A stretch of DNA of 64,000 nucleotides. It comes from Lepidodermella squamata (Eukaryota; Animalia; Gastrotricha). A program made the position numbers and the translations under genes. The stretch covers positions 3,286,001 to 3,350,000 of the forward strand of contig JBLDXI010000013.1 of the NCBI GenBank assembly GCA_047495785.1. Direction: 5' to 3'. The notes under the pieces are model-generated. The model had not been told where the DNA came from. It saw only the letters and a program-made list of their open reading frames with translations, and did not search any database. Each line of letters begins with the position of its first letter. Position 1 is the first letter of the stretch. This document shows, piece by piece, positions 49,794 to 52,862 of the stretch.

Positions 49794-50485
49794 TTATAAA
49801 ACCGGCAAGTCGGTTGTTGTTAAATTACTGGAATTATCGGTGATGGCGGTCGAGAAATTTTCGGCGATTGTCGCTAAAAATTGTTGATCAACAACGTTGT
49901 TGATATCGAAATAACTTATTGACGGTTCGGCTGTGGTCGAAGTCGAAAGCGGAATTTTCGCCCGATTCAGTTTAGGCGGCGGTAACTCAGCGACAGGTTG
50001 ATCGTAATCACTTGCGTACTCGGGCTGTTGTTGTTGGTAGATGTTGGGCCGGGTGTGACGGTGAAAAATGAAACCGGGCTGCTGATATTGCCGTCGAGTG
50101 TTGTCTTCACGAATGATAGAGCCATCGATCGAATTTCGCCTGGGAGGCAGGCCAGAAACGAGGCGATCACCCAAGGCTTGCTGGGCAACTATTCGCGACA
50201 GCGAGCCAGCTTGGAAAATTTAAAAAAAATTAAAAAAATTCGAAAAAAATTTAAAATCTAACCAAAATTTCCCATCGCTCGTTCATTCGCAGCAGCCATC
50301 GCTTTTGCGGAGGTCGGGTAACCATAGCCGTAGCCGCCGTAACCCCGCGGTGGCGTGTTCGGGTCATCAGCACCAGTAAGCCCGCCGAGAACGCCGCCTA
50401 TCACGTCCCAAACATCGCCGCTGGAACGGCGGAAAAGAGATGCGAAAAACGCCGCAAGTAAGGCAAGTTTTAAAAAATCCAGTTT
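49794..50485 (-). CDS. Secreted protein with a GYGGYGYGY segment; no ATG ahead of the signal peptide
   Basis: After acceptor TTTCTAG: KLDFLKLALLAAFFASLFRRSSGDVWDVIGGVLGG...RGYGGYGYGYP...; a phase-1 intron at about 50262-50210 joins in frame to ORF 49794-50174. Confidence 0.65.
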
Positions 50486-50602
50486 CTAGAAACAAATAAA
50501 ATAAAAATAAAATTAAGTTTCATCATCCAGGTAAAATAATGATCATGCTCCATTTTTGTATGCAGGTGAAATTATAAAAATCAGTTGAAAAATATTGTTA
50601 GA

Positions 50603-50902
50603 TCAATATCGCATTTTTCGCATCATTCGGCGACATTGGCCTCGTCGCAGTCCTATGCAAGGGTCCATGCCCGACATGTACGGATCCATTCCCATGCCGT
50701 AGCCATTCATGCCCATGTATTCGTAGCCCATGTACGGGTCGATCATAGCCATCGGGTACGGCTCCATCATAGACATGCCGGTCATCGTACCGTACGGGTA
50801 GAAGAGGCTCAACTGGCGGCGGGATCGTTTCTTCTCAGCCGCAGCAACGACGTACAGCAAGCTACCCAGCAAGATGACAACGCAAAGCAAGAATCGACTC
50901 AT
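50603..50902 (-). CDS. Secreted Met/Tyr/Gly-rich prepropeptide
   Basis: Signal peptide, KKRSRR|QLSLFYPYG, DPYM repeats, C-x7-C and a basic tail. Confidence 0.8.
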   Translation of the reverse strand: MSRFLLCVVILLGSLLYVVAAAEKKRSRRQLSLFYPYGTMTGMSMMEPYPMAMIDPYMGYEYMGMNGYGMGMDPYMSGMDPCIGLRRGQCRRMMRKMRY

Positions 50903-51017
50903 TTTCGAAAATATCTATAAAAAAAACAGAAATCATGCGTTTCTGTAAATTTTATTGGAATTTGAGCAAAAATAGTTTGCATCGAGGAAGAAAATAAAAA
51001 TAAATGTTCATCATCAT

Positions 51018-51278
51018 CTATTTGCCGTAACCGTAGCCTTCCCAACTGCCAGAGTGCGAATAATAGCCAGGTCGACCTCCCCTCCCGTACCCACCGCCAT
51101 ATCCACCCCCATAGCCGCCATAACCACCTGGGTATCCGCCACCATATCCGCCACCGTAACCAGGGTTTCCATAACCACCATAGCCCCATTGTCGGCGTTT
51201 CAGCGGTTTGCTTTCGACCGCAACCAAAATAAAGACGACGATCAGGCACATCATAGCGAAAATCGCGGATTTGCTCAT
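51018..51278 (-). CDS. Secreted Gly/Tyr-rich prepropeptide (QWGYGG...GK)
   Basis: Signal peptide, KRR|QWGYGGYG..., terminal GYGYGK (amidation-type signal). Confidence 0.85.
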   Translation of the reverse strand: MSKSAIFAMMCLIVVFILVAVESKPLKRRQWGYGGYGNPGYGGGYGGGYPGGYGGYGGGYGGGYGRGGRPGYYSHSGSWEGYGYGK

Positions 51279-51404
51279 TTTTTATAAATAAAATCTAAAA
51301 AAAAAGAAAAAAAATGTAAAATTAAAAAGGCGGTTCAGGTTAAATTTATTATTCATCTAGAAAATTAGAAGTGGCACTGATGTTTTTGCATATTAATATG
51401 AGGT

Positions 51405-51692
51405 TTAGAAGAACAGCCCAGGGTAGCCGTAGCCGCCGAGACCACCAAGGCCGCCAAGACCATAAGATCCGAGGCCACCATAACCCAGACCACCATAGCC
51501 CATGCCGCCGTAGCCAAGACCGCCATATCCGAGACTGCTATAGCTACTATAGCCAGGGTAGATCAGTTCGTAGCCATAAGTCGCCATGCCCGGGTAGAAC
51601 AGTTGCCGCTTTTCCGTTGGAGCGCTATCGGCCGAACCGATCAGCATCACGGCACCGAGAATCACGAGACCAATCATGGTGGCGAACTTCAT
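51405..51692 (-). CDS. Secreted GYGGL-repeat prepropeptide
   Basis: Signal peptide, EKR|QLFYPG, four GYGG(L/M) repeats. Confidence 0.85.
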   Translation of the reverse strand: MKFATMIGLVILGAVMLIGSADSAPTEKRQLFYPGMATYGYELIYPGYSSYSSLGYGGLGYGGMGYGGLGYGGLGSYGLGGLGGLGGYGYPGLFF

Positions 51693-51781
51693 TATGTTAG
51701 ATTAGAATAAAAATAGGTGTCTAAAAAAGATCTGCAACAAATTTATCAATCAATAAAAAAAGTAAATCTCAACAAATAATG

Positions 51782-51997
51782 CTACCACAGGTAGCTGTCT
51801 AAATTATGAAAATGATTAGCGTGCCGATCGTGTCCGTGAAACGAATGAGTATTTTCTTGAAATTGCGGCCGGATCGGCTTCATTTTCGGATTAGCAGATC
51901 GATATTTTCGAAAGGACAGGGAAGCGACCGCATGTTCGAAGTGAGTTGTAGCGATTAGAAGAAATGTGACCAAAACCAGCCCTTTCCTCCAGATCAT
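51782..51997 (-). CDS. Small secreted His-rich cationic peptide precursor
   Basis: Signal-like N-terminus, RKYR site, HSFHGHDRHANHFH; acceptor TTTTTCTAG two nt before the ATG. Confidence 0.6.
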   Translation of the reverse strand: MIWRKGLVLVTFLLIATTHFEHAVASLSFRKYRSANPKMKPIRPQFQENTHSFHGHDRHANHFHNLDSYLW

Positions 51998-52208
51998 GGC
52001 TAGAAAAAAATGAAGAGGTACAAAAATCGATTAAAAAATGAAAAAATACCAATTTATCGGGTGTGAACAGGTATTTTGAAACCAGGAACAAACATTAACA
52101 AAAAATCTAGGAAAAAAGAAACAGTTAAAAATCACCCAGTTTAATTTTCAAGCATCGAGAACATTTTGATTTGCGGAGAAGCTTCGGAGACAACAAAACT
52201 AGAAAAAA

Positions 52209-52781
52209 TTAATCCCAATAGTTGCCGGCGTTGTAGTTGTTGTAATATCCACGGCATCGGTGCGAATGCGGATGATGACGGCAGTTGTGGCGACCACCAT
52301 GACCCCACGGGCGTTGGCCGTACCCGCCGCCGTAGCCACCACCGTAACCGCCGTTGCCACCGTACCCGCCGCCATAGCCGCCGTTGCCATAGTAACCATC
52401 GTAGCCATATCCATTGCCATAGCCGTTGCCATAGCCATTACTGTAACCGTAGCCATTGCCGTAGCCATTGCCGTACCCGCCTCCGAGAATAGAACCCAAA
52501 ATGCCGCCGACGCCGACATGGCGCCGGTCACGCTCGAGTGAATCGTCATCAGAATCTGCGATTTCTTCGTCCAACTCGCTTTCAGCAAGAACTTCGCCTT
52601 CTTGAACCTCGCCCCAAACCTTGCGATAAGCCGGCCATGGTTCTTCGTCGGCGGTGAGTTCAAAATCCGAGGCGGACGGGTCTTCGTTTTGCAGCATCAC
52701 GTCGGCTACATTGGGCCAAGCCGGCCATGCCACAACAACAGCAGCAGAAACGAAGAAAAGTAAAACGCAAACTCGAAACAT
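52209..52781 (-). CDS. Secreted prepro-protein: acidic propiece, RDRR site, GYG(N/G) repeats, His/Cys tail
   Basis: MFRVCVLLFFVSAAVVVA signal peptide; D/E-rich pro region; RDRR|HVGVGG...GYGNGYGNG...HNCRHHPHSHRCRGYY. Confidence 0.85.
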   Translation of the reverse strand: MFRVCVLLFFVSAAVVVAWPAWPNVADVMLQNEDPSASDFELTADEEPWPAYRKVWGEVQEGEVLAESELDEEIADSDDDSLERDRRHVGVGGILGSILGGGYGNGYGNGYGYSNGYGNGYGNGYGYDGYYGNGGYGGGYGGNGGYGGGYGGGYGQRPWGHGGRHNCRHHPHSHRCRGYYNNYNAGNYWD

Positions 52782-52855
52782 GATATACGAAAACGATGAA
52801 ACAAATGAAATGATGAGGCAACTTGTGATGAAAGTTGATTGGAAAATCGGGCCGC

Positions 52856-52862
52856 TTTTATA
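52856..52862 (-). promoter_or_regulatory. TATA box of the secreted-peptide cluster
   Basis: GCG-TATAAAA-GCGG about 80 nt upstream of ATG 52781. Confidence 0.6.

Follow-up and report, generated by a model that had tools for sequence, protein, structure and literature searches.

In a recent annotation, spliced-leader (SL) operons were counted where co-oriented genes lie less than 250 bp apart and at least one of them carries the leader, and in chaetognaths the operonic genes are depleted in finely regulated classes (PMC12460157). The general view is that animal operons contain widely expressed or germline genes, since a single promoter leaves no room for fine regulation of each member. Among secreted effectors, the Caenorhabditis elegans nlp-29 cluster comprises six genes in 12 kb that are individually regulated (PMC2453101), and among secreted matrix proteins those of squid ring teeth use YGYGGLYGGLYGGLGY (PMC4555047). 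Here we describe g1 to g6, six consecutive genes for putative secreted proteins on the minus strand of a 64,000-nt stretch of Lepidodermella squamata contig JBLDXI010000013.1; this whole stretch is called the window, and coordinates are 1-based on its forward strand. An operon of effector peptides had been predicted here and described as unusual, a judgment that agrees with both the chaetognath depletion and the individual regulation of the nlp-29 genes. With slightly better than even confidence, we read the locus as a six-cistron secreted-protein operon that would be resolved by trans-splicing.

Layout and spacers of the g1-g6 run

Between 52862 and 49744, the minus strand contains six consecutive open reading frames (ORFs), all with a hydrophobic, signal-peptide-like N terminus. 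The genes, the spacers between them, and the flanking signals are as follows.

52862-52855, minus strand: TATA box TATAAAAG, 81 nt upstream of the g1 ATG
52781-52209, minus strand: g1, 190 aa
52208-51998, minus strand: g1-g2 spacer, 211 nt; acceptor tttttttctAG ends at 52000, 2 nt before the ATG
51997-51782, minus strand: g2, 71 aa
51781-51693, minus strand: g2-g3 spacer, 89 nt; acceptor cttttttAG ends at 51721, 28 nt before the ATG
51692-51405, minus strand: g3, 95 aa
51404-51279, minus strand: g3-g4 spacer, 126 nt; T-run and acceptor AG end at 51295, 16 nt before the ATG
51278-51018, minus strand: g4, 86 aa
51017-50903, minus strand: g4-g5 spacer, 115 nt; acceptor ttttttttatAG ends at 50915, 12 nt before the ATG
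50902-50603, minus strand: g5, 99 aa
50602-50486, minus strand: g5-g6 spacer, 117 nt; acceptor tttgtttctAG ends at 50486, 0 nt before the g6 ORF
50485-49794, minus strand: g6, two exons, 212 codons
49749-49744, minus strand: AATAAA of the last cistron, 45 nt past the g6 stop

These six genes occupy 3.1 kb behind one TATA box. The co-orientation described in the original prediction was borne out, and the stop-to-start gaps it gave (212, 90, 127, 116, and 118 nt) each proved to be 1 nt too long, the values along g1 to g6 being 211, 89, 126, 115, and 117 nt. All five gaps fall within the distance of less than 250 bp used for SL-type animal operons (PMC12460157). We found that TATAAAAG is the sole TATA[AT]A at promoter distance from any gene start in the run, in keeping with the claim that only the first gene has a clear TATA box; none occurs at promoter distance before g2 to g6, and a TATAAA 5 to 10 nt before the g4 ATG was rejected as a promoter because it is too near the ATG. 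The box lies within a 296-nt divergent region shared with a plus-strand secreted-protein gene (ATG at 53078), and there is no pyrimidine-rich acceptor between it and the g1 ATG. At the g6 end, the run is tail to tail with the RNase PH gene of a plus-strand cluster.

An unpaired acceptor is present just upstream of each of the five downstream cistrons, so that the T-rich 3' splice sites predicted at 52000, 51721, 51295, 50915, and 50486 are all there, 0 to 28 nt from the start. The site at 51295 was identified by plain reading of the sequence and the other four by a script scan. When four of the gaps in full and most of the g3-g4 gap were scanned for donors, the single donor-like match was a weak GGTATT at 52049, which upholds the expectation that most gaps lack a convincing donor; in the g5-g6 spacer, the sole GT is only 8 nt from the acceptor, too close to serve as one. 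Composition-preserving shuffles of four gaps placed an acceptor within 30 nt of the start by chance in 19 to 30% of cases per gap, with a product of 0.003, and the density of the acceptor motif across the window is 0.004 per nt; the acceptor pattern of the run exceeds chance. Two extra strong acceptor-like sites, at 52107 in the middle of the g1-g2 spacer and at 51357 in the g3 3' untranslated region (UTR) just before the AATAAA, may be either alternative trans-splice sites or chance matches in T-rich sequence.

Signals for 3'-end formation upstream of the acceptors are canonical before g4 and g5. The g3-g4 spacer has an AATAAA at 51350-51345, 49 nt before the g4 acceptor, and the g4-g5 spacer has one at 50956-50951, 35 nt before the g5 acceptor; both had been noted earlier, at distances of 50 and 36 nt that are each 1 nt too large. 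In these two spacers, about 5 to 35 nt is left between the cleavage site and the acceptor. Variants of the signal precede g2 (ATTAAA at 52145-52140 and GATAAA at 52058-52053) and g3 (GATAAA at 51747-51742), and the g5-g6 spacer contains a TATAAT and no recognizable canonical poly(A) signal.

We propose that g1 to g6 would be transcribed as one precursor from the single TATA promoter at 52862 and that this precursor would be cut into monocistronic mRNAs, with formation of the 3' end of one cistron coupled to spliced-leader trans-splicing of the next at its T-rich TAG acceptor, 0 to 28 nt before the start. Within 89 to 211 nt, each gap already accommodates the downstream acceptor and, except before g6, a canonical or variant poly(A) signal of the upstream gene, which favors co-transcription, and a co-transcribed, trans-spliced unit is the most economical reading of the spacing, one that the structure of the run supports.

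The corresponding locus of a related species and the start of g6

A search with the EED protein encoded in the window led, through a 64%-identical homologue, to a 13.5-kb contig (L001) of a metagenome assembly in ENA. This contig has the same gene order as the window (sulfotransferase, EED, RPL14, short-chain dehydrogenase, and RNase PH, the last about 80% identical), and the same species is present in three further assemblies, with 99.3% identity in the one compared. Tail to tail with this housekeeping run, we found three co-oriented minus-strand genes for secreted proteins, a, b, and c, and beyond them, as in the window, comes the divergent plus-strand gene for a secreted protein. The gaps between a, b, and c are 55 and 46 nt, and each has a T-rich acceptor 4 to 15 nt before the ATG. 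Gaps of this size are too short for a 3' end plus a promoter and are therefore the strongest evidence for co-transcription.

The product of c (235 aa) is 46% identical to g6 over exon 1 and 63% identical over the start of exon 2 (E values of 2e-10 and 7e-10), and by these matches c is a clear orthologue of g6. The a protein (132 aa) has an acidic pro-region, RRKRH, and a His-rich tail, and the b protein has 66 aa; the pairs g1/a and g2/b gave z values of 2.4 and 2.3, compared to 0.4 to 0.7 for the crossed pairs, and the best local match between g1 and a falls exactly at the processing site (DDDSLERDRRHV-GVGG versus DDDFFDRRKRHAPTIGG). Neither pair was significant by BLASTP alone, and the data weakly suggest that a and b are positional orthologues of g1 and g2. 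No counterparts of g3 to g5 were found in the relative's contig. The comparison of a-b-c with g1-g6 indicates that the unit changes by cistron gain or loss; the ancestral unit was probably g1-g2-g6, the three positions common to both species, and g3, g4, and g5 would be either insertions into the g2-g6 interval in this lineage or losses in the relative.

The surroundings of the run also differ between the two species. In the housekeeping run (42014-49691 of the window and 400-5882 of the relative's contig, both plus strand), the order and tight spacing of the five genes are kept, and the dehydrogenase and RNase PH genes are about 1 kb apart in the window, compared to about 230 nt in the relative's contig, a difference that points to an insertion. 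Beyond the divergent plus-strand gene, the relative also has a gene of two exons (9100-10018, minus strand) for a secreted protein with many QPGYGG repeats, where the window has a homeobox gene on the corresponding side; Gly/Tyr-rich secreted-protein genes thus appear to move around the neighborhood.

The orthologue in the relative also helps define the structure of g6, whose parts are as follows.

50485-50263, minus strand: g6 exon 1; frame open immediately past the acceptor (KLDFLKLALLAAFFASLF...), no ATG
50262-50210, minus strand: g6 intron, 53 nt, GTTAGA...CCAAG; absent in the relative's orthologue
50209-49794, minus strand: g6 exon 2 and stop; a conserved block, then a Q/P/Y-rich tail

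That c is uninterrupted at the exon junction, NF|A|GS, confirms this gene model. The conserved block of exon 2 reads GS(L/V)xR(I/V)VA..GD(R/K)LV.G.PPRRN.DGSII. The 53-nt intron was either gained or lost between the two species, which are about 80% identical in RNase PH. A homologue search with exon 2 gave no match, a profile search of 1.84 billion representatives returned only the relative's own cluster, and scans of JGI metagenomes found no g6 relative; with RNase PH as the query, the same scans found six loci with 26 to 52% identity over short segments, too distant to be relatives.

Past the acceptor AG at 50487-50486, the g6 frame runs AAA CTG GAT TTT TTA AAA CTT..., and the preceding in-frame codon is the TAG of the acceptor itself. 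The relative's orthologue starts ATG TTA AAA CTA, and in a DNA alignment its ATG lies over the TTT of g6, four codons into the g6 frame, with 12 in-frame nt retained back to the acceptor. By this alignment, the window species has lost the genomic ATG of g6. An upstream cis exon that would provide the ATG was rejected, the sole GT of the g5-g6 spacer being 8 nt from the acceptor. Initiation of g6 would then use either an AUG donated by the leader or the second codon, a CUG (50482-50480) in an A-3/G+4 context, and we give the two roughly equal odds. A flatworm spliced leader with AUG at its 3' end provides the initiator methionine (Cheng et al. 2006, as summarized in PMC9851317); g6 is like the targets of such a leader in having a frame that is open directly from the acceptor and no ATG in the genome and differs in having, as its second codon, a CUG in strong context that offers an alternative start.

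Two observations speak against a leader that ends in AUG. On the g4 mRNA, such an AUG would open a long out-of-frame ORF across g4, and in the neighboring AUG-less gene, RNase PH, it would be out of frame, so that a leader-terminal AUG is not consistently supported. RNase PH, an exosome subunit, has no in-frame ATG at its start in either species (48270-48320 in the window and 5085-5140 in the relative's contig, plus strand). In both, there is a short out-of-frame ATG...TAG mini-ORF whose TAG is the T-rich acceptor, followed by TG TC(A/C) CG, and an in-frame GTG overlaps the TAG of the mini-ORF.

Encoded products: peptides or matrix

The 10-residue Kyte-Doolittle maximum of the six N termini is 2.4 to 3.8, which agrees with the prediction of a signal peptide in every product. 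In g1, the signal peptide is followed by a 69-aa acidic pro-region (net charge, -17) ending in RDRR and by a predicted mature body of 103 aa with Gly/Tyr(Asn) repeats and a His/Cys-rich tail (41 Gly, 19 Tyr, and 7 His residues). The g2 product consists of a signal peptide and a basic, His-rich body of 46 aa, with no convincing convertase site. After its signal peptide, g3 has the site EKR|Q, and the predicted mature part, which begins QLFYP, has 66 residues, a net charge of -1, and four GYGG[LM] units followed by GLGG repeats. In g4, the signal peptide and KRR|Q precede a predicted peptide of 57 aa, QWGYGGYG...GYGYGK. The g5 product has the site RSRR|Q and then a predicted mature part of 70 residues, beginning QLSLFYP, that is rich in Met, Tyr, and Gly (16 Met and 9 Tyr residues) and has a cationic C-terminal C-x7-C loop.

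The prediction that most products have basic convertase sites held for g1 (RDRR|H), g3, g4, and g5 and failed for g2, which has none, and for g6, in which an RR is located at the end of the hydrophobic region. Cleavage would expose an N-terminal Gln in three products (g3, g4, and g5), as had been proposed. The description of the run as one of processed secreted peptides accordingly fits g1, g3, g4, and g5, and not g2, without a convertase site, or g6, a larger protein of 212 residues with a conserved N-terminal block. In an alignment, g3 to g5 have a common plan: a signal peptide, a spacer of 5 to 8 residues, an invariant Arg-Gln, and a low-complexity Gly/Tyr(-Met)-rich body; g1 has the same combination of signal peptide, basic site, and Gly/Tyr-rich mature part after its acidic pro-region. 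With composition correction off, g3 matches g4 over the full length with an E value of 4e-10, and we regard g3, g4, and g5, on this alignment, as paralogous prepropeptides.

Known families gave few leads to function. None of the six proteins, nor any of the relative's three, had a Pfam match above threshold, an Rfam scan of the whole window found nothing, and there are no further copies of g1 to g5 within the window. The best ESM-atlas look-alikes of g4 and g5 scored 0.73 and 0.80, in the range expected by chance; these low-scoring matches include arthropod glycine-rich proteins, a nematode-specific peptide family, and a schistosome miracidial antigen. A more specific likeness was seen between the predicted g4 peptide and C. 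elegans NLP-31 (sequence taken from PMC9658076), which have the same first eight and last two residues and are identical in 40 of 59 columns, with an alignment score 6 standard deviations above 2,000 composition-preserving shuffles.

We lean slightly toward the view that the products form a mixed, co-expressed barrier or defense set of the nematode NLP-29/caenacin kind. This peptide reading is favored by the (K/R)R|Gln sites of g3 to g5, the anionic pro-region of g1, the Gly-Lys end of g4, and the likeness of g4 to NLP-31. Three findings count against it: BLASTP gave no alignment between g4 and NLP-31, so their likeness may be a convergent repeat structure; the predicted mature peptides are weakly cationic, with net charges of -1 to +4; and g3, with its four GYGG[LM] units, is like structural proteins and looks more like a self-assembling matrix protein. 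The full proposal, an operon of effector or barrier peptides that has grown from three to six cistrons, includes an ATG-less g6, and encodes an NLP-29/31-type peptide in a probable non-nematode, is one that we put forward tentatively.

An alternative to which we give appreciable, though less than even, weight is that the run is a matrix cassette whose products form a Tyr-cross-linked extracellular material (eggshell, cuticle, jaw or stylet, or adhesive), a role that fits either model of transcription. The evidence for it comes from several members of the run: g3 has a subthreshold match to the Pfam family Lamprin (E value of 0.68; 10.4 bits versus a cutoff of 34), Gly/Tyr/Leu motifs like those of g3 make up the amorphous parts of squid ring-teeth proteins (PMC4555047), both g1 and g2 have many His residues, a Tyr-rich segment is found at the same place in g6 and its orthologue, the relative encodes the secreted QPGYGG-repeat protein nearby, and the predicted peptides are only weakly cationic. 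On the other side, three features seen here are typical of peptides of the regulated pathway, namely, the invariant (K/R)R|Gln site (g3 to g5), the long anionic stretch ahead of RDRR (g1), and the Gly-Lys terminus (g4); in addition, the g4 peptide is like the antifungal NLP-31 from end to end, and no structural-protein family of Pfam reaches threshold.

Transcription of the run and comparison with known systems

A TAG acceptor is also found upstream of most of the other starts in the window (the RING-finger genes, EED, RPL14, the short-chain dehydrogenase, Sec24, and a CDK), which makes the acceptors a property of the genome and not peculiar to g1 to g6. In favor of the operon reading, a poly(A) signal, about 50 nt, a TAG acceptor, and an ATG are found in this order at EED, RPL14, and adh_short of the adjacent plus-strand run as well. 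What is peculiar to the g1-g6 run is its spacing and content. Several observations weigh against transcription of g1 to g6 as a single trans-spliced unit. The 211-nt g1-g2 gap and the g5-g6 gap with its TATAAT could hold small promoters, promoters could lie within the upstream genes, and the nlp-29 cluster, the closest functional analogue, is individually regulated (PMC2453101). The exact products of g1 to g5 were absent from the assembled-run collection, as was that of EED. An RNA-like run, X1, contains 39% of the sampled words of 49700-53000, compared to 95% for a DNA-like run, and X1 was unlisted for the 175-nt g4-g5 junction, for which the only holders were DNA-like, in a search that was not RNA specific and is weak. 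In the literature, we found no publication linking gastrotrichs to spliced leaders.

These points bear on the possibility that the genes are a tandem array, each with its own compact promoter, in which the acceptor marks an outron and not an operon. TAG acceptors stand before genes outside tight runs, so an acceptor alone is no proof of an operon; the 211-nt g1-g2 gap, the TATAAT in the g5-g6 gap, and the separate promoters of the C. elegans nlp-29 genes, which respond to different stimuli (PMC2453101), point the same way. Yet the spacers of 89 to 126 nt are already occupied by an acceptor and, except before g6, by a canonical or variant poly(A) signal, those of the relative measure 55 and 46 nt, no TATA[AT]A is found at promoter distance before g2 to g6, and the strand runs and gene order are conserved between the two species. 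We consider independent promoters unlikely. Co-transcription of g1 to g6, taken by itself, seems moderately probable on the structural and comparative evidence. The unit as originally predicted, which would be co-transcribed and resolved by trans-splicing, is thus supported in part, by structure (the spacing, a poly(A) signal 35 to 49 nt before the acceptor at g4 and g5, the one TATA box, and the lack of convincing donors in the gaps) and by the gaps of 55 and 46 nt in the relative.

The unpaired acceptors could also be explained by one promoter with cis-splicing, in which a short noncoding first exon, with its donor in the g1 5' UTR, is joined alternatively to the five acceptors. The g1 leader does contain GT dinucleotides, such as that of a GTATAT 7 nt ahead of the ATG, and no donor lies nearer to the five acceptors. 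Against this, the g1 leader has no ATG and g6 would still be startless, unpaired acceptors are also found before first genes and before unrelated genes throughout the window, and the AATAAA before the g4 and g5 acceptors (with weaker variants at g2 and g3 and none at g6) fits 3'-end formation and not the skipping of cistrons; we regard this alternative as very improbable. It is equally hard to credit that g2 and especially the ATG-less g6 are chance ORFs or a decaying pseudogene: g2 has only 71 aa and no family match, and the g6 family consists of one other cluster among 1.84 billion representatives, but g6 keeps a 212-codon frame across its 53-nt intron and conserved blocks in common with the relative, and g2 starts 2 nt past a strong acceptor with a signal-peptide-like N terminus and a positional counterpart in the relative.

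The window comes from a very compact genome, with about 2 kb per gene and genes in same-strand runs. Its animal genes include HSF, a homeobox gene, EED, and C1q-collagens; the best named matches are to a mollusc for EED (36% identity) and to a brachiopod, a centipede, and an echinoderm for GET3 (about 63%), with no phylum standing out. In the products of two plus-strand genes (57626-58504 and 60008-60625), a collagen triple helix precedes a C1q domain, and each domain scores above its Pfam threshold. On the minus strand, two paralogous RING-finger genes of 139 aa (1709-2128 and 2923-3342) have near-identical upstream regions, with a TAG acceptor about 20 nt before each ATG.

If the proposed six-cistron operon is real, this lineage-specific unit of secreted peptides would be a counterexample to the housekeeping/germline view of animal operons. 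It would mean that genes can be co-transcribed so as to yield secreted products in a fixed mixture and that a unit of this kind can evolve as cistrons are added. The relative's locus and the window would form a dated before-and-after pair, with three and six cistrons, and g6 would offer a naturally occurring case of ATG loss from a cistron. If g4 is truly related to nematode NLP-29/31, this type of peptide is older or more widespread than known.

Of the known systems, lamprin, with its GGLGY repeats, and the squid ring-teeth proteins are closest to g3, which has four GYGG[LM] units and then GLGG repeats. Unlike them, g3 has a convertase site and an N-terminal Gln, as do its peptide-like paralogues, and its match to the Pfam Lamprin family is far below threshold.

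The nematode nlp-29 cluster (nlp-27 to nlp-31 and nlp-34) and the caenacin (cnc) genes, which encode antimicrobial peptides of the epidermis, resemble the run in having six clustered genes with signal peptides and Gly/Tyr-rich products and in a content that differs between related species. NLP-31 shares with g4 the QWGYGGYG N terminus, the GYGG periodicity, a similar length, and the Gly-Lys end (PMC9658076; PMC2453101). In contrast, the nematode cluster extends over 12 kb with individual regulation (PMC2453101), compared to six genes in 3.1 kb behind one TATA box, and the g1-g6 peptides are much less cationic and give no significant BLASTP alignment. The source organism of the window also has no close relative in the protein databases, its nearest named GET3 matches (a nematode included) all being about 60% identical, and it encodes C1q-collagens; g4 is therefore only a possible homologue of NLP-31.

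The organization of the run is closest to that of the SL operons of C. elegans (SL2), Ciona, Oikopleura, flatworms, and chaetognaths. Like these, it has co-oriented genes with spacers of about 50 to 200 nt, an unpaired 3' splice site before each downstream gene (with a canonical upstream poly(A) signal shortly before it at g4 and g5), one promoter-like element in front of the first gene, and a gene order conserved in a related species. The distance from poly(A) signal to acceptor is about 35 to 50 nt in g1-g6, whereas in C. elegans operons it is about 100 nt. In known SL operons, housekeeping and germline genes are overrepresented and finely regulated ones are underrepresented (PMC12460157), whereas g1-g6 consists only of lineage-restricted genes for secreted peptides and proteins, paralogues included. 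Thus, while the SL-type operon layout itself is already known, secreted, lineage-restricted peptide genes behind one promoter would, if RNA confirms them, be new.

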